A stretch of DNA of 64,000 nucleotides from Podarcis tiliguerta (Eukaryota): assembly GCA_965153285.1 (NCBI GenBank), contig OZ229111.1, one strand, 5' to 3'. The notes beneath the pieces were generated by a model. The model saw nothing but the letters and a program-made list of their open reading frames with translations, made no database searches and was not told where the DNA came from. Positions 3,275 through 64,000 of this stretch are shown one piece after another. The translations under genes were made by a program, and so were the position numbers. Numbering within the stretch: the stretch's first letter is position 1; each line of letters starts with the position of its first letter.

Positions 3275-3461
3275 GTTCAGAGCTCAGTGTTAGAGCATCT
3301 GCTTTGCACACAGGAGGCCCAGGGTTCAATACCCTGCATCTCCAGATAGAAATGGGAAAGCTTCCCTGCCTGAAACCTTGGAGAGTCACTGCCAGGAAGT
3401 GTAGACAATTATAAGTTAGGTAGGTCAGTGGTTAGACTTGGTCAAAGGCATTTTCCTATTC
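3275..3461 (+). mobile_element. tRNA-derived SINE, Squam3-like
   Basis: tRNA-like head with A box (agctcagtgttagagc) and B box (ggttcaatacc). Body continues cctgcctgaaaccttggagagtcactgccag...gtgtagacaa and ends aaggcattttcctat. Confidence 0.75.
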
Positions 3462-21243: not shown

Positions 21244-21907
21244 ATGACGACTTCACTGATCTTGCATCCACGCTGGGCGGATACCTTCATGTACGTGTAT
21301 GAGGAGAACCCGAATGAAAATAACCAGAATAAAATCCCAGCAATGGAAGGGCTAAGTGGGAACTGCCCAGCTACCCACTGCAGGGATTTAATCAGTCACC
21401 CGGTATTGGGTCGTCATTCCAGCACCATTGGGACTCACCAGGGTTCTGTCTACACGGATATACCTGCTCCAGATGCCGCCAGGCAGTGCCCCGCGCCACC
21501 AGCCTCCTCCAACGCCACCTTGGGCTATGGCTATCCTTTTGGAGGCAGCTACTACGGATGCCGATTGTCCCATTCCCACAACGTGAACTTACAACAGAAG
21601 CCTTGTTCGTACCACCCAGCTGAAAAATACCCCGAGCCCAGCGGCTCCCTCCCCAGCGAAGAACTATCCTCAAGGGCCAAAGAGTTTGCTTTTTACCCGA
21701 GCTTTGCCAGCTCCTACCAGGCGGTTCCTGGTTATTTGGACGTATCAGTGGTTCCAGGTATCAGTGGCCACCCAGAACCAAGACACGACGCGCTGCTTCC
21801 CATGGAAGGATACCAACACTGGGCTCTTTCTAATGGTTGGGACGGGCAGGTCTATTGCTCGAAGGAGCAATCACAGTCTACCCATCTCTGGAAATCACCT
21901 TTCCCAG
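21244..21907 (+). CDS. HOXC13: Homeobox C13, coding exon 1
   Basis: MTTSLILHPRW...YGYPFGGSYYGCRLSH..NVNLQQKPC...SRAKEFAFYPSF...WKSPFP. Phase-1 donor CCAG|gtaggg. Confidence 0.97.
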
Positions 21908-24643
21908 GTAGGGTGCTCTTGAGATCGACTTCTGCGCTTTTTTGCTCCGGCAGCATGATCGCGTGCATATGCTATATCTTTAACCGCCCAGGTAAAATAG
22001 GCTTTGGGACGCTTGCATGGGCACGTATGGGGAAGAAGGTGAAACAAAGCAGCCGGTTCTCATATTCAGATACGTACCTTGGAGCTCCAGGGTGCTTTCG
22101 CAGCCAGTTTGGCAGCTGCACTCCTGTGTCTGTCTGTGTATGTGCGTGTGTGCCCCTCCTTCCCTCGCTGCGTTGGCTCCCTTACCTGGATCTCTATCTT
22201 TTTCTTTGATTCCCCCCCCCCGCCCCGCACGCTTTGAATATTTTAAATTAAATTTCAGAACATAGGAAGAGGTGGCATCTCTCCCCCTCTCTCCCCCTCT
22301 CTTTCTCTTTACTCAGAAAGGCTGGGCTTTTCGTAAAGGTACAGTAAATCATATTGCAATTACAGAAGTAGCTGTCAAGTGACATGAATCTTACAAAATG
22401 AACCTTGTAAGACGAGTGGGGAGAGAACGAGAAATAAGGCGCTGCTTTTGCCTCTGGTTAGAAATCTGGAATGAGTGACAGCCTGCGAGTAACCCTGAAA
22501 GCTGGGAGTGCTCCGGGCTTATCTTACTGCCTTACCACTTAGAACAGGGAGGGAGGGAGCGAGAGGGAGAGGGAGAGGGAGAAAGATGAAAGACCAACGG
22601 ACGTCTCCTTTGCTCTTGGGGTCCCCACCTTGTAATCAATAAGCAGGCCCCTCTTAATGATTCGAATGGATGGATTGGAGCGAAGAGATTAAGATAAAGT
22701 AACCGGGGAAATAAATAAGGGGGTGGGGTTAGGAGGAGAACACACACATACATTTATCTTAGGAATACTGGAGAGGGGATACCCCATCGGATAAGACAGG
22801 GCTTGCCAACAATGCCTGCGCAGAGCGTTGCATGATGGGTTTTCCCTTTCCATGGGAAGAGGAATCAGAGTGTAGCGAGTGTGGGAGAGAAGGCCTATCT
22901 AGATCTTAACTGTGTTGCAGCCACATATTGGTGTCAGAGCTTGGAAGGGTCGATGGCTAGGGGAAAGTCCCCCACCCCGCGCTAGTTTTTTAAAAAAGAA
23001 GGCATTGAGACTTCTTTGCGGAAGCTGAAGGGAGGGTTCGGCGAGTGGGGGAGAGAGGTCCATAGGATTCCTAGCATGAGATGACTTCCCCCATCTTCAT
23101 TGCTTTCACCCGCCTGGTTAAAATGTAGTTGAGGTTGGAGGGACCTGCTCCGTGCGTTACTATTGCTCGGGAGGAAGGTGGAAGACGTTGTAAATGAACT
23201 TCTCTTCTCTTCCCACCCCCACCCCCAACCCGCCCCATTACCTTATTTATTCTGATCCCATTTTTGTATAGCTCTGATAATATTATTAAGTCCCCATACA
23301 CCAGTTCCCAAACATTGAGAGGTGTGTGAGAGACAGCGCGCTCGCAGTAGTGTGAACCACAATTTTGTCTTGCTTTCCTATCCTTGGGCCTTGATAGGAT
23401 TCCCAGTAAATGTTGCTTATGTAGACACTTCTTAGCAACAAAGGAAGAGCAATCGCACGGAGAAGTGTCTTCAAAAGCAGTTCAGGCTGTTTCTTTATTT
23501 TATATCTGTTATGGAACAGACCGGCTGGAGAGATTTTCGCTTTGCTTCGATAGAGATCCCCTCTTTTTTCAGTGTTTATATTATTATTCGGCAAAGCGCC
23601 CTTATTTCGTATGGAGTCTTAAGCCTGCACCTTTAGATCAAGAAGCCATGGGAAGGGAGGGACTTGATGCGCAAGTGATTACAGTTAATCATGAAGAATT
23701 GGCATAGACAGCCTTAGCATAAGGGGCTATTAAGGAGAAGACTGAATGCATTAGGGGTGATGAGAATTCATTGATTCCCCAGCCGGTTCTGGACCAGGAG
23801 TAGGTAGGTAACATTTCTCAACAGCGTGAGTACCGTCAAAAAAGCCGCTGGGCCCTTTTATTTTATTTAATGCCTCTACCATAAGCGACAAAGGATGTGG
23901 AAAGGCTAGTTCAAGGTCCCTCAAGCTTGCAGATGCTCCTTGTGTTGCATAGATCAATCAGTGCGGAGCGTCTCTAGAACAACACAGACGCGCACACTCA
24001 CACACACACACGGCTGCTTCCCCTCACCAAGTCCCCTACCCGGATCCTACGAGCTAGCATAATTAATGAGGTCGCCTAGGCTATCAGAGGATCTGTCTTT
24101 TAAAACGACAGATTAAAATTGACCGGATGCTTAGAAGGGGAGTGAAGAGCTGAAGGTTAGATTCTGTCTCCAATTTTTACTAATTTTGGAGCTAACGTTA
24201 AGGGTGCTGTGCTTGCGAAATGCCTGGTCCGTGACTTGGTGCTCTTTCTTTATATCTGTCCTGGACAAATATCGCCTGGAATAGTAGCAGTCCCCCCCCC
24301 CCGCCCAATGCTAATATATTAATACTTTGCTCAGCCAGCCAGCCAGCCAGCCAGCCCATCCGAGTCCCAGCACCTCCCGCTCTTTCTTTCCCTCGGTCTT
24401 TCCTCTTCGCATTTCCCCCTCTTCCTCTAATTTATATCCTTTTCCCCACACGCATACAAACTCCTTTTCCTTATTTCTCTCTCTGTTCTCTCCATAATGT
24501 CTAGCACAGACATTGTCCAGTTAGTTTACCAGATGCTGTTTAATGTAACATACACCCTCTCTCTCTTTCTCTTTCTTTCTCTCTCCTTCCACGTTCTCTC
24601 TCTCCTGCTTTCCCCCCCTTTCCTGTTCTCCTCATCTTTACAG

Positions 24644-36769: not shown

Positions 36770-37003
36770 CGTTGTTTTATTTTATAAAATGTTTTATGAT
36801 TTTTTTAAAAAGCATATAAAAAACCGAAAGGCAGAACTTAGTGTTTTGTTTTGTCTCAAATTGCTAAAGGTGGGTGGCACCCTTTCTCCAACGCAAGTTG
36901 GCGCCCACGTGACCCCTGCGGACCAATAGGGTGGACCTTTAGGTTTAACTATGTTTAATGTCAGATAGCAATAAACTAGAAGCTCTTGGTCAGGCCCGCG
37001 GAA
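36770..37003 (+). promoter_or_regulatory. HOXC12 proximal promoter
   Basis: Cluster of TTTAT Cdx/posterior-Hox sites (36776-36800), E-box CACGTGAC (36906), CCAAT (36923) and GCAATAAA (36968). Confidence 0.6.
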
Positions 37004-37568
37004 ATGGGCGAACATAATCTCCTTAATCCTGGGTTTGTGGGACCGTTGGTGAACATCCATACGGGAGACACCTTCTATTTCCCCAATTTCCGAGCCTCCG
37101 GAGGACAGCTGCCCGGCTTGCCGTCTCTCTCCTACCCAAGAAGGGACAATGTCTGTTCTCTGCCCTGGGCATCCTCAGAACCCTGCAACGGATACCCCCA
37201 GCCCTATCTCAGCAGCCCCGTGTCTATTAACCCTTCCTTCAGCCGAGCCTGCGACCTAGCTAGAGTGGAAGAGAGCAAGTGCTACTATAGGGAGGCGTGC
37301 TCCGAGAACGCTCCCCTCAAAAGGGAGGAGAGGGTTAGGGACAATGCCTTGATGCCTCTCGAATCGGGGATCCCCAATGGAATGAGCGGCAGTTTCGGCA
37401 AATTTGACTATCCGGCTCCCGAGGCGGTGCCCCACGATCCCCCCTCTTGTCAGTCTTTGGAGTCAGACTCCAGCTCCTCCTTACTCAATGAAGGCAATAA
37501 GGGCGCCACCAGCGAGCCGTCCACAATGGTTTCCCCTATCAACCAAGGAAGCAATCTTTCCGCTGGGG
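37004..37568 (+). CDS. HOXC12: Homeobox C12, coding exon 1
   Basis: [33 protein letters not shown]...[23 protein letters not shown]. Phase-1 donor GGG G|gtaag. Confidence 0.97.
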
Positions 37569-38771
37569 GTAAGAACGTGCGACCAGGAAATATATATATA
37601 TATACGAATAAGAAAAGCGAATTTATGCAATGCCTTTTCTTTATTTTATTCTTATTTTGTGTTCTCTCTCTCTCTCTCCCTCTCTCTTTCTCTCTCTTAC
37701 GCGCGCGCGCGCTCTCTCTTGCTTGAAAAAGTCTGCTCGCGACTCTTGCTGTTATAAATTCCATGAAATTAGCAGCTGGGACTGAAGCATGTCTATTTGT
37801 GCCGAGGCCACTAGGGGTAGCACTCAAATGCCTCGTGCTTTATTAGGTGCTGCTTCTTTTAAAAGAAAAGCCTATAAACATGTAAATATCCCATAAAAGA
37901 GATCGCGATGGCCCAGATAGACAGATTTTCATGCCTCTCTTTCTTTCTCTCTCTCCCCCCACCCTCCTCCCGAATCTGAACAGGCACGCTACATGCAGGA
38001 CAATTTGCCACTGGGTGCGTGAAGCTTTTGCAACAGAAATGAAATGTAGAAGGGTGTGTGATTGTATTTGGAAGATTTGGTAGAAGTCTGACTACAGGGC
38101 TGGGAGGGCTAAACTTCCACGGGTTTTCTGTCCCCGGTGAGATTAGCCACCCTGGGTAAAAACCCATTCTAAGGATGGTGCCAAGCGCTGCATTAAAAAA
38201 AAGAAACAAACCCCCTGGTTTTCAAAACCCAATTCTCGCCTTCCCGCCATCCCAGCCCATCCCCATACAAAACCGGGAAGGTTCTATAAAGAAAAAGTAT
38301 ATATCTCCACGCAGTGCTGAGACACCATTTGCCAAAATACAAAAAAACAAAAACAAACCCAACCCAAACAAACTCTCTCTCATAAAGCTTCCCGTTATGT
38401 GCCTGATCCTCTGGTGAGCAAACACTTCCAGGAACAAGAACCAGTTGGTTCTCGTCTCCTGTGAAGCGTCCCTGGCTGCTGGAGATGTTTCATTCCCTCT
38501 GCAGAATCTGTCTTTGGGACTCTGAAGACAGAGGCTTCCTCGTCCTTAAACTTCAGATCTGACATCTCCCAAACTGGATACCTAAGGCATGCCAACCCAT
38601 CTGGTGCCTTGAGGTCTTACACGGTAACCGCAGAGACACTCTAGCATTCATTCTAGCTGATGGTGCTGGTACTTTTTGGCTGTTCGGGATCTGTAAGAGC
38701 TAGCTTAGGTTGCTTATTTTTCTGTAAGATAAATAAGCCAAAGTTGCCACCGGTTATAAAAGTCCAGCGGT

Positions 38772-38821
<50 letters not shown>

Positions 38822-39183
38822 ATCCTAACCAGCTTTTATCTCCGATCTCTCCTTAAATCCTAATAGTTCCGAAAACCTGCAATGTATGACTTATGTGGTA
38901 TGCGTGGTGACACAGGAGCCCAGGAGCTTGGAATCTAAAACGCAGATGTACAGGTCTTCTTCCCACCTTTCTCTCGAAGTTAAAGCATCTTTACTGGATT
39001 GCGCATTAGAAACGTGTATCTCATATTATTAAATAACGAGCCGTGTGTGGGTCAAAAAGGGAGGGGGGAAGCTTTCCCTTTTTTAAAGCGTTACCCGCTC
39101 CCCTCTTTCTTTTCGTTTCTTTCTTTCTCTTTCTCTCTTCCCCTCCATGTGTTTAAATCTCCTTTCCATCACGCTGTTCTTAG

Positions 39184-39422
39184 GTGCTCCCTGGTACCCG
39201 ATGCACACAAGGTCCCGGAAAAAGCGAAAACCCTATTCTAAGCTACAGCTAGCGGAGCTGGAAGGGGAGTTTATGGTCAATGAATTCATTACTCGCCAAA
39301 GAAGGAGGGAGCTTTCAGATCGGTTAAACCTGAGTGACCAGCAGGTGAAGATCTGGTTCCAGAACCGGCGTATGAAAAAGAAAAGACTCCTCCTGAGAGA
39401 GCAAGCCCTTTCCTTCTTTTAA
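39184..39422 (+). CDS. HOXC12: Homeobox C12, coding exon 2 (homeodomain)
   Basis: Acceptor ttcttag|GT, then [27 protein letters not shown]...[22 protein letters not shown]. Total CDS 804 nt = 267 aa. Confidence 0.98.
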
Positions 39423-42400
39423 AGTTCAGACAAGTCCGCTATCGGGTAAAAAAACCCCACAGAGACTCTCCGGCCTTCTTCATCACAACTGGTGGTACCG
39501 GGACTCTTACCTGATCTGGTTTGAATAGCCAGTTTAGATTATTATTATTTTTTCCTTTAAGACAAAACAAACCAACGAAAGTCAGTATCCTTAAAAAAGA
39601 TAAAGAAAGCCAGCCAACAGCAGGCGTGTCTACGTTATAAGTGTGTGATTGAGAGAGTATGAGGGGTTGGGATGCTTCTCTTCCACTTCTGGACCTGTTA
39701 GGGAAGAACCAAATGTGAATATGCAGAAAGGAAACCCCCCCCCCCCCTTCATCAATCAGCGTGGCTTTTCTAATGTATGGTTCACCAAGATTTGTCAGTC
39801 AGTCTCGTTGAGTATGTTCTGAATGTGAGTCTTGAGCCCGACACTCTCGCTCTTGTTACGCGTGTGCGAGCATTCACAGGTAGGGTTTCCCCTCTAAGCA
39901 ACAGGGTTCCCTGTTTTGTGTGGGGCAGAGTGAGGGAGGGTCTCCATTGCCTTGGCCTTGGCTTTGTTTGGTCGGTAACCCGGTCCTCAGCAAGAGAGCA
40001 TTCCAGGAAGCAAAGTCACTGTCCTATATATATCTCGGTTTAGTGTGTTGGGATTTTTCATTCTCTGGAGTAAAAGCTTAAGTGGATGTGGCATTCACCT
40101 TAAATCAACCGTAACCATTCTGATGGAGAATGGCGAGCCAGTGTTTTATGTTTGCCAGGGTTTATTTTCAGGGCACACTGGGCGGAAAAAAGTTCAGTAC
40201 CTAGATAGATGTTTGCAGCGTATCTATCTCGATAATAATAGGGGTGTCCAATATGTGGAACTTCGAGGTTCAGCTGGCTGTCCCCCGTGCTTGGCGGGTG
40301 GGAAATATATGGGTGCTTTTCTCGGATGCTCTTCTGGGGGAAAGACGAGCTGAGGATGGAATTTTGTAGACATCCACTCCCAAGGCTTTTCCAATGGCAG
40401 GCGGTGCCCACACGCGCGCTTCTGAGGATGCCCACTGTACCTAGACCCAGTGTACCTAGTGGGAATACTTTCAAGTAAACAACGCCTATGATTGGGCTGC
40501 AAAACACCAAAAAAAGCGGGGGGGGGGAGAAACCCACCTCGAGTTAATCCAATACCCCATAAAGTGAGGAATGATTTGTCATGTTAGGGTATTATAAAAA
40601 TGCAACCTTTTCAGAGGCTACAGCTGCAACCCTATACTCCTTGGCATGCTGGGGTTTAGCAGGGGAGCTTACTTCAGAGTAGACCTGTGTAGAATTGCGC
40701 GGTACCTCTCGCGTTCCTAGCCCAGCCGCGCCGCCTGCGTGGGTCTCCTCTGTCCACAACCCCATAAGCGGGACAGAACGCCTAACAATAATTTCAAATT
40801 GTGTTTTGATAATAGCTCCACTGAAGGAGACTTCGTGCCGCTTATTATGCGACTGTGTTTATTGATGATCAAGATGGTGGCGAGGGGCGGTGGGGAGATG
40901 CCCCCTTTTATACATTAACTATAGTGGCAGCCCCTTGGAGCTAATTAAGCTATTAATAGCTTCCCTCCTTCTAAGATAGAGAGTTCTCTTCTGGCATTAA
41001 AAACGTTTTCTTTAATGGTGGCTATTTTCGAAATGAATGAGATGTTTCTCCTCTACCTCCACCACCCCTCCCCTCTTTTAATCTTCCTCATATTTAGTTA
41101 GATTTTTATTTTTAATCACGGCAGTTCTCCTTTAAGAATCAAGAATTCTATCTCTCTCTCCCGTGCGTGTGTGTGCGTGTGGCTGTCTGTGTGTGTGTTC
41201 TCTCTCACACACACATGCACACACACTTATTTTCATTCCTGATTTTTCATAGGCAGCAGCTGATGACTCTGAACATTTATGGGGTGTGTCGCCTTATTCC
41301 CCCCCCCCCCCCACTACAGCCACACAAACGCACGCATTCTGCTTTGGGGGATATACGGTAATTTCTGCCCAACGCATCCATTCATCCTTCTAACTCCCAC
41401 CCCCACCGCCGGTTCCCCTTTGTACTTTCCCCGGTGTAGAACAGTCCCAAAGCAGGCAAGGGGAAGCGCAGAGCGGGTTGCCTTGTCGGTCTCAGCTCTT
41501 GCCTCAGACAACCATGAGATTTCCTAATAGCTCTGCCAGGTTTGGGCATTGCTTAAACTCCCATTCCTTAAATTCCCACTCAATGCGGGGAGGAAGGCGC
41601 GAGGGGAGGCGGGAGACAAGGGTTGCTGCAACCGTGAAAGTAACCCGACAGGAATCTCTCTCCCTCTCAGCCCGTTAAATGATTGATTTGGGGAATAAGT
41701 TCCCTTGATATTCCTGGTACTTATTCCATCGGGGTCCAGGAACCTATTCTCGTTCTGTTCTGCTGGTTTCCTAATTGCATACTTAAAAAAAAAAAAAAAT
41801 GTCTCGGGCCGCGGGGGGGGGGGGGCGGCCGGGAACTGGACGAAGTGACAAATGAGCCACAACAGCAAAGTGGGGTGAGGGGGGGTCAAGACGGTCTAAG
41901 CGGCGAGTTTTGCTACGACAGGCTTTGCTTCATTCGTTTTTATATCGGAGGGGATTAATTTTATGACAAAGGCAACGTTTTCCTGGGCCAGACTCAATTG
42001 TCACCACGTGGCTCCCCGTCCCGGCGTTCATGGTCATGGCCGGTGGCAGGAATGCCTCGCCTTTACGAGCTGCAAAGGATGCCGTCTAGTCCTTAAAATG
42101 CCTCTGTGTGTCCCCCGCCCCGCTCATTCTCCGCCCTTGCAAGCCTTATATTTAGGTCTGCTTCCCATGGCTGTGTCATCGTTCCTTGTCTTTATTCCGC
42201 TTTCCCCTGCCCCCCTCCCAATATCCAGAGTTTTGAGAGGTCCCCCATCCCAGTATCACCCTTTGGGTATATCACCCCCTCCCCTTTACAAACTCTAACC
42301 TTTGTAAAAGTAGAGGCATCCTCTGCCTGTGAGTGGCTTTGAATCCAATAGGTACCCAGTCACAATTATGTGCAATAGATTGGGGGGGGGGGGCGCGTGT

Positions 42401-49737: not shown

Positions 49738-49914
49738 ATTTTTATATGACTTGGTTGGTAGCAAGGAGACACAGCAATATTTTACTGTTGAGAGAATAAA
49801 TTAATTAATATGTCTGTAGCAACCAACTGCAGTGGCTTCATGGCTGACTGCATTTAAACGAGATATATGTATCAAGCCTCGCTGGTGTTGTTAACAAGAG
49901 TGATAATAAAGATG
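49738..49914 (-). ncRNA. HOTAIR: Block homologous to the conserved core of the HOTAIR last exon
   Basis: Minus strand CATCTTTATtATcActCTTGTTAACAAcACCAGcGAG (31/37 identical to the recalled human sequence). About 70 nt later comes TAATTAATTtATTC..ACaGTAAAATATtGCtGtGTC, with the same spacing as in human. Position and strand are syntenic. Transcription is not shown. Confidence 0.65.
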
Positions 49915-52881
49915 AAAAGGATAGGAAAGATACAAAGATGGATACATTTGTATTCCTTGCAGGAGCCATAAGAGTTTGCTTAGAATTTCTTAGAGCCAGC
50001 CTTTGTTTCTGTGAGGTTATGTTAACCAGCAGAGTTGATGAATCAATTAAAGAAAACCACTCACTTACCAACAAACAAACAACAACATGAGGTTATGTCT
50101 ACGTGTATCTATTATTATTATTCCCAATAACCTTAATTTGAAAGGAAATGTGCACACAGTCTAGCTCGAGTTAAGGGCTATGGAGTTCTATAGATTTCAG
50201 AGAGATGTGCTCCCTCATCCTACCCCTATTTATCTATTCCCAAGTAAATGTGACTGCCTATAACTGCAACCTCAAAGCAGGTGTTTAAATCTCTCCCACT
50301 TGAAAGCGATAAATTTTGCAGCCGGATCCTATCCAGTTTTACTCAGAAGCAAGTTGACGCTTAACTTGGACTGAGTCGTTTTCCTATATTTGGAAACTAG
50401 GGCTTTCCCATAATTAAGAGTGAAGGTGGCTTTAAAAACTCTCCTTTTATGGCATGCCCAAAAGTTAGAAATCTCATTTGCCTTTCTGGAACCCAAATAA
50501 GACCACATTTGCATTTAAGAATGTTTGTTTATGGGTTGGCTGGGTCTGAAACAGACGGACTAAAAATACTTTCCCCCTTTAATAAAGTGATGTGATGAAG
50601 GCCTTGTGGTAGTTGATTGTTGTTATGCAAGCAGCCTGGGCTATATCTGAAGATCTTTTAAGAATCACAGCCAACATTAATCTTCCCAAGGGGGGGGGGG
50701 AAGCATCTTTGTAGTTGTATCCAAGACCCTCCCTTTACCTTCTCCAAACCCGTGTTCGCTGGAGATGAGATGATAATTAAAGGGCATGTGAAAATTCATC
50801 TCATTGTGATGAAGAACTATTAATCTATTATGAGGCTGTGTGAGGTTTTGAGAAAGAAAGAATCATTAGTATTATTAGTATTATTATTATATGAAATAGG
50901 GTGGAGTAGGAGGCAGTCCTAATAACAGCCAGCGCCTTCCAGACTCACCATCAAAATCTGCGAGAGCTCTGCCATTTACTGCAGTTGAGGAGTGAGTTCC
51001 ACCGAATTGTCCTTTAAAGGTTGCACAATCAGCAAAGTCCTGCTGCCGACACCCCTTGTGTCCCTCGAGAATTCCTGACTGAGTGGGGGCAAAATATTTG
51101 CACATTCTGCATGCATTTGCGTGGTAGTGCAACTTTTGGGGGCAGTGAGGGGCCATACAAAGCAGCCATAGGAATAAAGGAATAAATATTCAAAGGAACA
51201 AATCCTGGATGTAAATGACAAAGGAAAACGCATGTACTCCGTCTCAGAGGTACACGTAGGGCCACCAAACGAAGGGCTTTAAACACCCACAAAACACACC
51301 TCCCAGTAGCTGCTGCTAAAATCAAAGGGAGCCGGCAGCTTTGAAATGAAGGCGACGATTAGCCCGCCAAGACCGGGCAATAGGTGGTTGTGCTTGGCGA
51401 CAGAGACTTGAACACGTTCACCCTTTTTCATGCTTATGATGAGTCTTATTAGAATGTTGTGTTTATCCACGCGCGCGCACACACACAAATAAACATACAA
51501 ACAAGCAAACAAACATGCTCCGCTTGCTATGCCAGTTATCTGCGTCAGAATGTAGAGATACAGTATCAGCCTAACAATACCTATAGTTTACTGCCTCCTC
51601 TGTATTCCTGAAAGCGCAGGATCCAGTCAAAGTGAAGCGCTTGTAAGTCCCCTTGTTGTCGATTAAGCACGTGCTTAATTCTTCCTCGTTGAAATTAATT
51701 GGTCTTTGGTCGTGCCTTTCCTAGTTACTCATCTATATAAACGACTGGCGGCGTTGCATCAGTGAAGTATGCGGCGCTGATTTTAAAAGTTCTGAGTTTG
51801 TGAAAGATGCAATAACTTGGTAGCCATTATTACTCGGTTGGTTTAAAAGGGGAATAAAATGACTTAAATGGAGACGATCGCCTAATACGTGCAGTGGATC
51901 GGGATCCATGACCCGTCTATCGATAGCGCTCCATTATGTCTAGGTAACTGACAAGGAAAAGGATATGCTATATAAATTATATTATATGATCAGCTACAGT
52001 CTCGATTCCGCCCCCCCCCCCAACAGCCGCCACCACCATCATACAAGCCTGAACTCCCCGCACTGACAACCACGGACCTAGCGTTTTCCTGGGCCCAAAC
52101 CCAGCATTTCGAAAAGCAAAACTAAACCTGTTTTCTGCACTCTGACAAACTTTTTGCCACTGTTGTGATTTGGCTGCTGCGGAAATGGCGAGTCAGGAGA
52201 CTCTCCTTAAAAAGGAAAGCAGGGAGGCTACACGCGCTTTCTTTTTACACTTTCCATTTCAGATTGACGTAAACAAAACATTCTATAGATTTAAATAAAA
52301 GCAGAGGCGATTTTCTGAATGGCCTCCTGCATTAAAATTAGAGTGAATTCGTAAATCGTCCGTCCTCGTCGTCGTCATAATGAAGAATTGCTGTTTTTTT
52401 TTTAAGAATATGGACAGATAAATTCATTAAGAGAAGCGCCGGCCACCCCCCCACCCAGTCACCCAGCCACCCTCTACCTCAAGGCCACATTCAACCGCAA
52501 CAGCTCCGGACGCTGTAATCTATACGAAGCCCGGCGTTGAAGGACCCCCTCTTAACAACCCTTTAATACAGCAAACTAAAGATCTGGGGAGACCTTTGTT
52601 GATCTCCAATGATGAGGCCCGCCCCCCCTTCTTCTTCCTCCTCCTCCTCCTCCTCCACCCCCCACCCCCACTCCGTCCCCTACTGTAGTTCAGAGAATAT
52701 TGTACCTCGTTTGCCGCAGCTTAAAAACCAGCAAATGTGTTAGCAATTCTGCGAGACCTTGTCTGCCCGGTGCTAATCTTTTTTTTTTTTTTTTTTTTGG
52801 TCGGATGACTTCTGTTTACAACAGTCTGTCTGGGTGGGCGGGGGCCGCCATTACAAAGTGAAGGTCAAGTTAGCATCCTAC

Positions 52882-52968
52882 CTTATATGGTATACGGCGG
52901 TCCTCCATTTTCATGGATTTGTCACAACAGAGCTAACTGGCCATCGCATTTCTTACCCAAGTAAACAT
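52882..52968 (-). ncRNA. HOTAIR: Block homologous to HOTAIR exon 4, with intact splice donor
   Basis: Minus strand ATGTTTAC..AGAAATGCgAtGGCC...AAATGGAGGACCGcCG..CC.TATAAG|GTAGG, versus recalled human ATGTTTACAAGACCAGAAATGCCACGGCC...GAAATGGAGGACCGGCGCCTTCCTTATAAG| exon end. Confidence 0.65.
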
Positions 52969-55424
52969 ATGGGTCTCTGTCTCTCTTTTTAAACACCCCC
53001 CCGGCCCATTTCCCCCTCTCTTTTACATCACCATTCTTATTTTGAGGGAGGGGGGGGCTATCTGAATGCAACGATCAAGAGGAAGGCTGTGGGGGTGCGT
53101 GGAGGGTGAGACTATGTGGGAATGAGACCAGAAGTCCGCATGACGACCGCTGCTTGGAAAGTTTTTTTTCCCCTCCCTCTCTCTCCTCCCCCCCCCCTCC
53201 GGGATTGCAGACTTCAAACAACTCCTCTTTCAGCAAGATGCAAACACGTCTGCGATGGAGGAAATTAAACGTCATAAAGAAAAGCCCAATTAGGGTTTAA
53301 TGTCTCAACATTACGGTTTCCTCCAGAAAACAATGAAGTTCGCTCGGTAAGGAGAGGGGGGGAATGGGTGGGGGGAGGGGATAAGGGAAAGGAGGGTTTA
53401 GATTTTCTTGTCTTAATCGTATAATCTTTAAATAAAGGAGGAGGTGGGAGGGATGGGGTGGGTAGATCAGAGCGTCTGAAATTAATAAGAGCGGAAATGA
53501 GGGGAGATCCTGCAATGTCTTGAGCAGCCTGTCTACTGTGGAAGGCTGGATTATAGACATTCTCATATCACAGGTTGTCCGTCGGAGGTCCCAGAACGGG
53601 CCTAATTGCGCACAGGAGATCTGCCAGGGATTCGGAGGTTAAAGAGGGGAGTGGGTGGGTGGTCTTTACATAGATTGAACCGATAAGGTGATATCGCGAC
53701 AAGGAAAAAGGGCTGGATGGAGGAGAGGGGAAGGGAAGGGAAGGGAAGGGAAAGGGAGGAAATTTAAAGACAGAGAGAGAGGCGAAAGTGGGTGGCTAGT
53801 GGGTGAATAAAGAGGATTTATTTATTTATTTCCCACCCACCCACCCACCCCCAAAAGAAAGCGCCCCTCCCTCTCAGTGGCAAAGCTGTTCACGTTATGG
53901 TAAAAGATAAGTCTTCCTCTCGAAGGAAACATATGAAAAATGGCTGGAGTCCTTGTTTTGGCTGAGACGGAGGAGAAGAGCAGGTTCGCTTCTTTACCAC
54001 CGCAAGATGGTGGAGGGGAGCATGAGAATTAAATCTCGATCGAGGTCAACCCATAATTTTAGGCTATCCAAGTAGCTCCCCCCCCCCCGCACCGCTTCCC
54101 ATTTTCTTCTCGTATTGGCAGCGACGTGGGAGTGCGGTGGGGACGGTGGGGGTAAGGGAGGGAAAGCTGCAAACCAAACAAAAAAAACCCCACGCCCTTG
54201 CAAGAGAGTAGATTTCCAAGGGACTCAATGGGACTTTGTTCCCAAATAATATCATAGCAAGATCATAACCGCAACGCCGGGGCCGCTATAAATTTCGCCT
54301 GGGTCTATGGCCCTCCTCCATAGTGGTAGCGGATACAGTTGTTACTTAGCGGAGGCGGCAGTGCCGCAACGCCTCTGAACAAAAAAAAAAGCCCAAACCC
54401 AATCATTTATATTGTCTTGACACCCGGCGTTCGTGCGTGCTGTTTAGCAAGGATATTGTTGTGGGATGGGCGAGGAATATAACAACAATCGTTCTCCTAG
54501 TCCATTAGAGAAAATGAACAGATTTCCCAGTGACAGTTTCCAAAGCCGCTTAATCTATACAGGGTGCGCGCGCGCGCTTGTGTGGCTCTTCCCAGACTAA
54601 TGCCAGATGTGCGTTTGCAGCGCTATCTGCAGTTCTTCCCCGTTTTGAACTTCCAGTCCTGTTTATTTGTTTGTTTTGGGATTTCTGCGTGGCGCAGAAG
54701 GCACGGGAGAGCTTTCTTTTGATTCGTTTGCCCTGCATGGCGGAGGGAACTGGTAAGCAGGACTCCAACTCAAAAAAGACGGCCTCTGTTTGTATTTTTT
54801 TTTAAAAATCAACACGGAATATACTTGTCCTTTCCTTTCAGTCCCACATTATCAATTAGCGTTGCTTTATTTTTGTTTTAAACAGTAGCCTACTTGCAAC
54901 GTTACCTACGATGCGAGTCACTACGAGGAGACATCCTTATGTGCACATCCTTGAAGTCAACGGGAACTCCGAGTTTAAAATATTTAGTATCGCGCTGCTA
55001 GCATTTAAAGGTATTTTAAGAACAAAGCCAAACAAATCTGCATCCTTTTCCAACGTGCAGTGGACGCACAATTTCGGATTTGGTCTCCCTACAGCCACCC
55101 CTCTCGCTTACTGAAATGGACAATGCGACCATGTGAGTTCCTAAACTCCTTACTGTAAAAAAAAAATATATCCTTTTATATGCAGGCACAGAATAGCAGA
55201 TTTGAAGAAGTCCCAAAGGGAGTATGTCTGATAAAGAAAGCAGAATGATGGAATGTGCGCGTGAGGGAGAGAATATAAGCATCAAACAGCACTTCAGACA
55301 GCTGGTTCTGAATCCTAGTAGGATGAAGGCAATAACTAAAGCGATATAAAGTTACTAAGAAAACAGATATTTTAAATTTCTGTTTCGTAAGTCACTCTGT
55401 ATGTATATATGTATAAAGAGAGAG

Positions 55425-55554
55425 NNNNNNNNNNNNNNNNNNNNNNNNNNNNNNNNNNNNNNNNNNNNNNNNNNNNNNNNNNNNNNNNNNNNNNNNNNNN
55501 NNNNNNNNNNNNNNNNNNNNNNNNNNNNNNNNNNNNNNNNNNNNNNNNNNNNNN
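55425..55554. other. Assembly gap (N run)
   Basis: Run of n characters within a (GA)n tract. Confidence 0.99.
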
Positions 55555-62788: not shown

Positions 62789-63467
62789 ATGTTTAACTCA
62801 GTGAACCTAGGAAACTTCTGTTCCCAGTCGCGCAAAGAGCGGAGTGCTGACTTTGGAGAGCGAGCAGGTTGCGCTTCCAATCTCTACCTCCCCAGCTGCA
62901 CCTATTACGTCCCAGAATTTTCAACTGTGTCATCTTTCTTGCCACAGGCCCCCTCTCGCCAAATCTCCTACCCTTATTCCACTAACCTCTCTCAAGTGCA
63001 GCCAGTGCGAGAGGTCTCCTACGGGCTAGACCCCTCGAATAAATGGCACCATAGAAGCAATTACGCCTCGTGTTATTCCGCGGAAGATCTGATGCACAGG
63101 GATTGCCTCCCGCCTTCCACCATGACCGAAATGCTAATGAAAAACGAAAGCGTGTACAGCCACCACCACCACCCCAGCTCCAACCACCCGGCGTCCACTG
63201 GCTTCTACTCCAGCATGAACAAAAACAGTGTCCTCCCGCAAGGCTTCGACCGGTTCTTCGAAAACGCCTACTGCTCCACCGAGAACCCGCCCGAGACCTG
63301 TTTGCAGAAGACCGAGAGCAAGCTGGAGACCGACTCCCAGCCCACCGCGCTGTCATCCCGCGGCGACCAAGGCGTAGACCCGGAAGACGAGGAAGAAAAC
63401 ACCAACCCGGGCTCGTCAGCTTCATCCTCCTCTGTCAACAAGGAAGGGAGCAAAACCAGCAACTCGA
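62789..63467 (+). CDS. HOXC11: Homeobox C11, coding exon 1 (exon 2 lies beyond the window)
   Basis: [54 protein letters not shown]...[13 protein letters not shown]. Phase-1 donor TCGA|gtaggt. Confidence 0.96.
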
Positions 63468-64000
63468 GTAGGTAGAGAAAGCAGTAAATGGAAAGGTTAA
63501 GGGACTAGCCCGCTGTTTTGTCGGTCAAATTTTATGTGGAGTTTTATAAGCATTCAAAGGATTTTATTATAACCTACAAAGCTCTTTCTTGCAACGAGAA
63601 GAATTTTTACGATGGGAAAGGCTCTTTGAGAAAAATGGAGATGTTAGGCGCAGACACAGTATCTCAGAGTCTGTGAAATTTTAAAAGCACACCATGGTGA
63701 CAAATATTAACTTTGATCATGAACTTACATGAGCATTTTAAAAGGATTTGGTCCCGGGCTTCTGAGGGTAAAAGGCAATTGGGCAGAACACTGCTCTTGC
63801 TTCCTGTCCTCGCGAGGAGGCACTGAGAGATGCACGCGAGCGAGCGGGGGGGGGGGCGGGTGGTGTTATTTTTTCCCCTTATTGAAAATGCATGCAGAAA
63901 TTCAAATATATATCTATATTGCTATGAATGTGGGGAAAGGGAATGCAACGTTTTCACGTCCTCAGTGCATCCTGTGTTGTCGTTCTTGCTCCTGTTGTTG

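Follow-up and report, generated by a model that had tools for sequence, protein, structure and literature searches.

Does a splice donor kept at its homologous position in another vertebrate lineage testify to selection on splicing, and with it to a function of the RNA, or would the same letters be kept anyway by constraint on the DNA that contains them? The question arises in the HoxC cluster of the squamate Podarcis tiliguerta (assembly GCA_965153285.1, contig OZ229111.1), within a stretch of 64,000 nucleotides that was analyzed as a whole and is referred to below as the window. An earlier sequence-only reading had recognized there what appeared to be the donor at the end of HOTAIR exon 4, and had put its retention forward as the best local evidence for RNA-level function. 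He et al. reportedly described HOTAIR in 2011 as a mammalian lncRNA, a description that is still widespread, and a literature search for HOTAIR in squamates or reptiles returned nothing.

Results

The donor lies where HOTAIR is expected

The plus strand of the window carries HOXC13 exon 1 (21244-22209; open reading frame (ORF) list and Pfam HoxA13_N, E 9.7e-39), HOXC12 (36986-37726; six-frame ORF list), the HOXC12 homeobox exon (39147-39422; ORF list and Pfam Homeodomain, E 3.4e-20) and HOXC11 exon 1 (62789-63475; Pfam DUF3528, E 7.2e-58). The last of these is 94% identical to Hox-C11 of Gekko japonicus and 90% identical to that of Paroedura picta, and its relatives among the matches include Gekko, Paroedura, Liasis, Sceloporus, Anolis, birds, marsupials and frog. 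Mammalian HOTAIR is transcribed from the strand equivalent to the minus strand of the window. Since HOXC13, HOXC12 and HOXC11 all read on the plus strand, the site under study, where a donor and a conserved noncoding element both read on the minus strand between HOXC12 (36986-39422) and HOXC11 (from 62789), is placed where HOTAIR is expected, antisense between these two genes.

The HOXC12-HOXC11 interval as a whole has an observed/expected CpG ratio of 0.58; in a check for a CpG-island promoter, the block homologous to exon 4 itself showed 0.45-0.55, with values near 1 on either side. The segments at 51400-52600 and 54200-55200, with ratios of about 0.8-1.1, resemble two hypomethylated patches bordering the conserved module. 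Elsewhere the window contains runs of N at 1916-2047 (132 bases) and 55425-55554 (130 bases), a partial tRNA match on the plus strand at 3281-3336 (36.1 bits, model positions 9-63) that is probably a tRNA-derived repeat fragment, and a GT/CA microsatellite at 41162-41232, whose weak mir-297/mir-466-type Rfam matches on both strands are a low-complexity artefact.

The donor is intact and comparable in strength to HOX donors

On the minus strand the letters run ccatataag/gtagga (the slash marks the exon/intron junction), with the final exon-like base at 52882 and the GT at 52881-52880, exactly as the sequence-only reading had them; the 5' splice-site motif AAG/GTAGGA, read directly at 52876-52884, is a candidate for use in RNA, and a GT donor stands at the homologous end of HOTAIR exon 4. 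Splice sites were scored with an approximate position-weight matrix (PWM) built on textbook values, which is not equivalent to MaxEntScan. By this measure the donor reaches 4.45 bits and ranks 18th among the 1136 minus-strand GT sites at 39500-62700, so that this region has about one minus-strand donor of such strength per 1.3 kb. The same matrix assigns 5.74, 4.24 and 0.95 bits to the real HOX donors of the window (HOXC13, HOXC12 and HOXC11, respectively), and the HOXC13 exon-1 donor, CAG/GTAGGG, has the same GTAGG core. Because its score is on par with those of the window's real HOX donors, the donor at 52881 is probably usable.

A competing donor that had been reported near 52956 is likewise present: TGG/GTAAGA occupies 52951-52959 on the minus strand, with its GT at 52956-52955, and scores 3.04 bits (rank 38 of 1136). 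The Rfam mammalian consensus has no GT in the columns aligned with it, which marks this second donor as lineage-specific.

Alignment indicates homology to HOTAIR exon 4

Rfam was run in two ways, at gathering thresholds and as an E-value scan of 39500-62700 admitting matches up to E 10. No HOTAIR family was reported at gathering thresholds. The E-value scan returned HOTAIR_3 (RF01906) at 52883-52985, over model positions 1-98 of 98 (33 bits, E 8.8e-4; gathering score 80), HOTAIR_2 at 49860-49925 (47.5 bits, E 1.4e-8; gathering score 60) and HOTAIR_1 at 49778-49815 (22.9 bits, E 2.1; gathering score 44), and gave no match to HOTAIR_4 or HOTAIR_5 at E up to 10. The HOTAIR_1, HOTAIR_2 and HOTAIR_3 matches are colinear and on one strand, with HOTAIR_2 and HOTAIR_1 downstream of HOTAIR_3 in the RNA sense. 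Although HOTAIR_3 stays well below its gathering score, its E value and full-length alignment indicate homology, and the kinship with exon 4 proposed in the sequence-only reading is now backed by this alignment. Model position 1 falls one base inside the junction; the exon-4-homologous block thus spans 52882-52985 on the minus strand, the alignment covering 52883-52985 and the base at 52882 being the last before the donor. About 64 of the 98 consensus positions are identical, and the proportion rises to 23/28 nearest the junction. Within the block, a putative forkhead-like core, TGTTTAC (52961-52967, minus strand), equals the HOTAIR_3 consensus at 7/7 positions.

The silence of HOTAIR_4 and HOTAIR_5 agrees with the situation in mouse, where the second half of Hotair exon 1 matches human exon 4 and the first three human exons are without a homologue (Schorderet and Duboule 2011, PMC3102750). 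In tammar only exons 4-6 of HOTAIR were found, and no short exon is better conserved in mammals than exon 4 (Yu et al. 2012, PMC3541083).

Two observations concern the models and matches themselves. The HOTAIR_1, HOTAIR_2 and HOTAIR_3 matches are reported on the plus strand, that of the HOX genes, and the published conserved element and the donor read on the minus strand; these Rfam models, which represent sequence only, seem to be stored in antisense to the RNA, so that strand-aware annotation would mislabel their matches. The HOTAIR_2 block at 49860-49925, in turn, shows stronger homology than the exon-4 block and carries TTAAC-type and TTTAT-type homeodomain-like cores.

Conservation continues across the junction into a known element

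Nepal et al. (2020, iScience, PMC7139118) described a 32-nt HOTAIR conserved noncoding element (CNE), which they call an enhancer and locate eight nucleotides away from a splice site. Jawed vertebrates other than teleosts have kept it, and a paralogous copy lies between HOXD11 and HOXD12. Across vertebrates, according to the same study, the sequence conserved around the CNE is "much longer" than its 32 nt and corresponds to an eRNA region, and the CNE region features open chromatin, H3K4me1/H3K27ac, bidirectional CAGE and frequent intron retention, with exon/intron-border reads enriched in the nuclear fractions of human cells. Its species table lists alligator, painted turtle, frog, coelacanth, gar and elephant shark but no squamate, and leaves birds blank because their HoxC cluster is unassembled; host-transcript evidence is marked for the coelacanth HoxC copy (PMC7139118 Table S1).

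Inside the HOXC11-HOXC12 interval of the window, an orthologue of this CNE occupies 52842-52873 on the minus strand and matches the Table S1 element at 30/32 positions by eye. One of the two differences (position 22) is the state described as typical of non-mammalian vertebrates, and the next 6-7 bases past the CNE also match the Table S4 oligo of the same paper, with one extra C. An eight-base spacer, intron positions +1 to +8 (52874-52881, minus strand), separates the CNE from the exon end: with the intron beginning at 52881 and the element at 52873, the spacing is exactly 8 nt, as in human. The CNE match together with this exact spacing identifies the 52881 donor as the splice site that adjoins the published CNE, and, judged by synteny and alignment, this site and the HOTAIR exon-4/intron-4 boundary are orthologous. 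The conserved block had been taken to end at the donor, which is not the case: it extends past that point, with the CNE beginning 8 nt downstream inside the intron, and in all conservation spans about 150 bases of the minus strand, from 52985 to about 52835, and is highest on the intronic side.

This geometry bears directly on the idea that the GT merely follows an accidental resemblance to exon 4. Such an accident could be argued from a HOTAIR_3 score far below gathering (33 vs. 80 bits) and from the frequency of donors this strong, roughly one per 1.3 kb per strand; however, the HOTAIR_3 alignment (E 8.8e-4) covers the full model, shares its strand with the HOTAIR_2 match (E 1.4e-8), is colinear with it and falls in the right intergenic interval, and a 30/32 CNE match stands at exactly the published 8-nt distance. 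We therefore regard a chance origin as highly improbable.

Candidate acceptors and the extent of a possible exon

If squamates produced a spliced HOTAIR-like lncRNA, the donor could have been kept mainly because splicing is under selection. This would suit a donor placed exactly at the homologous position with a good score, an exon-4 block that is most conserved right beside the junction, the status of exon 4 among the short exons of mammals (PMC3541083) and the host-transcript evidence for the coelacanth HoxC copy (PMC7139118 Table S1). An internal exon would nevertheless need an acceptor, and at the human-equivalent exon start there is none, as the sequence-only reading had also noted: by PWM, the AGs that would put the first exon base at 53015-53019 reach -9 to -13. 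The substitute then suggested, ttgcattcag, does end at 53062 but is weak as an acceptor (-0.83), and better ones lie further upstream, with first exon bases at 53086 (1.55), 53111 (1.26) and 53249 (6.49). Only the last is strong, its candidate site extending over 53249-53264 on the minus strand and ranking in the top 0.6% of minus-strand AG sites. This acceptor-like site, TTTCCTCCATCGCAG, lies 368 nt upstream of the donor, and the two could bound a 368-nt exon if the transcript begins further upstream. Downstream of the donor, candidate acceptors that might be joined to it would open their exons at 52205, 52176, 51947, 51607, 50758, 49784 and 49708. The missing acceptor at the exon start fits both mouse exon 1 (PMC3102750) and tammar exons 4-6 (PMC3541083), and would be compatible with a mouse-like first exon.

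A CArG box straddles the junction

Read directly and with a generic regular expression, positions 52881-52890 fit the CArG-box consensus CC(A/T)6GG perfectly. This putative SRF site straddles the exon/intron junction, and the final exonic AAG and the intronic G(+1) both belong to its consensus. The mammalian Rfam HOTAIR_3 consensus retains the CC and the A/T core, the sole in-core change in the window being T to A and thus still A/T. In the human motif eight of the ten positions can be taken from that consensus, and the last two, both G, are presumably the donor G and an exon-final G. In human H1 cells, ENCODE records a 131-bp SRF peak (score 631) over the CNE (PMC7139118 Table S7), and the human junction is placed under it by calculation from the CNE coordinates and the 8-nt distance. 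CC(A/T)6GG occurs in the window at chance-level frequency (5 observed vs. 4.66 expected by composition), and the weight of the junction CArG box comes from its positional conservation and the human SRF peak, the motif class alone not being rare; by analogy with human, we infer that SRF would bind it in this squamate as well. Two further matches to the consensus fall in the same intergenic interval, at 50443 and 51011.

A junction that lies within constrained sequence and overlaps a transcription-factor motif is expected to retain its donor even without any splicing. The retention of the donor is thus probably in large part a by-product of DNA-level constraint, and it is not independent proof of selection on splicing. 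What stands of the original interpretation is an orthologous boundary with an intact, good donor at the homologous position; the further step, to the best evidence for RNA-level function, founders on the conserved sequence on both sides, on the inclusion of AAG and G(+1) in the CArG box and on the SRF peak at the corresponding human place. With these letters accounted for by the CArG box, what could speak for splicing specifically is limited to T(+2), at 52880, and positions +3 to +6, at 52879-52876.

The same findings weigh on the spliced lncRNA considered above: conservation not only carries on into the intron but peaks there (30/32), the letters AAG and G(+1) are common to a motif under a human SRF peak, mammals often retain this very intron (PMC7139118), and HOTAIR_4 and HOTAIR_5 yield no match even at E up to 10. 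We consider it a possible but doubtful account of why the donor was kept.

Discussion

The reading toward which we lean is that DNA-level constraint mainly explains the conservation at this locus, with the donor usable but unproven. The exon-4-like block, the 8-base spacer and the 32-nt CNE would together form an anciently conserved HoxC module, about 150 bases long, that most likely works first as DNA, namely as an enhancer close to HOXC11 to which SRF and other factors would bind, as described in mammals, with the junction doubling as a CArG (SRF-type) motif. This enhancer would be transcribed antisense to the HOXC genes, yielding an RNA with an intact, probably usable 5' splice site that may be the first of its transcript, as in mouse, where the exon-4 homologue lies in the first exon; a 5' splice site near the start site could serve splicing or U1 binding alone. 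A search of sequencing runs for the locus matched no RNA run, which does not mean that the locus is silent; the six runs it did match, of unspecified type, shared 0.92-0.95 of the sequence words where they came from one organism and 0.40-0.43 where they came from two close relatives. Several features pull against a DNA-first reading: the donor equals real HOX donors in strength, the exact CNE spacing would also be expected from selection on splicing, T(+2) and G(+5) are unexplained by the CArG box, and the CArG consensus is not rare.

Roles of U1 in elongation and chromatin retention are established in other systems. Selection could have kept the donor for the binding of U1 snRNP, with no productive splicing, and the bound site might help the enhancer transcript to elongate or retain CNE-bearing RNA on chromatin. 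The donor-CNE distance, fixed at 8 nt, would be in keeping with such a role, which also fits the intron-retained nuclear transcripts of mammals, given the enrichment of border-spanning reads in human nuclear fractions, and makes an acceptor, of which none is obvious, unnecessary. Sequence alone cannot tell U1 binding without splicing from the other readings, and we hold it to be distinctly unlikely.

Set beside known systems, the locus has close counterparts. Like the HOTAIR CNE of PMC7139118, the squamate element lies in the HOXC11-HOXC12 interval, on the HOTAIR strand and 8 nt from a splice site, with conserved flanks, whereas no squamate appears in the species table of that paper. The comparison with human HOTAIR exon 4 (RF01906) rests on alignment over the full model length, highly conserved junction-side cores and a GT at the exon end; in contrast, the squamate block scores 33 rather than 80 bits, has no acceptor at the equivalent start and contains an extra, lineage-specific GT, and the regions for human exons 1-3 find no matches. 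As in mouse exon 1 (PMC3102750) and in tammar (PMC3541083), nothing conserved lies further upstream than the exon-4 homologue, but the mouse and tammar HOTAIR were seen as RNA, while the squamate site and its CNE are read here in DNA. Measured against a CArG box or SRF site, finally, the consensus match is perfect and ENCODE has an SRF peak over the corresponding place in human, the squamate match being a putative binding site.

By homology and geometry, the locus is a squamate member of the published conserved module of HOTAIR exon 4 and CNE. That the 32-nt core and its flanks are ancient was already known (Nepal et al. 2020, PMC7139118); what is new is that a squamate, from a clade missing from the table of that study, keeps the exon-4-like block, the donor, the 8-nt spacer and the CNE in exact geometry. 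With a CArG box overlapping the junction, at a place covered by an SRF peak in human, the donor cannot serve as proof of RNA-level function, and the question of RNA versus DNA becomes testable, as mutations at +2 and +5 spare the CArG box and mutations in its A/T core spare the donor. A bolder proposal, which we put forward as speculative and rather unlikely, is that the donor-plus-CNE unit already existed as an RNA feature before mammals: a HOTAIR-like antisense transcript, present in squamates and perhaps in every jawed vertebrate that has the HoxC CNE, would begin just upstream of the exon-4-like block and depend on the donor for splicing or for U1-dependent handling. Were this true, the same ten bases would be an SRF site in the DNA and a splice site in the RNA.
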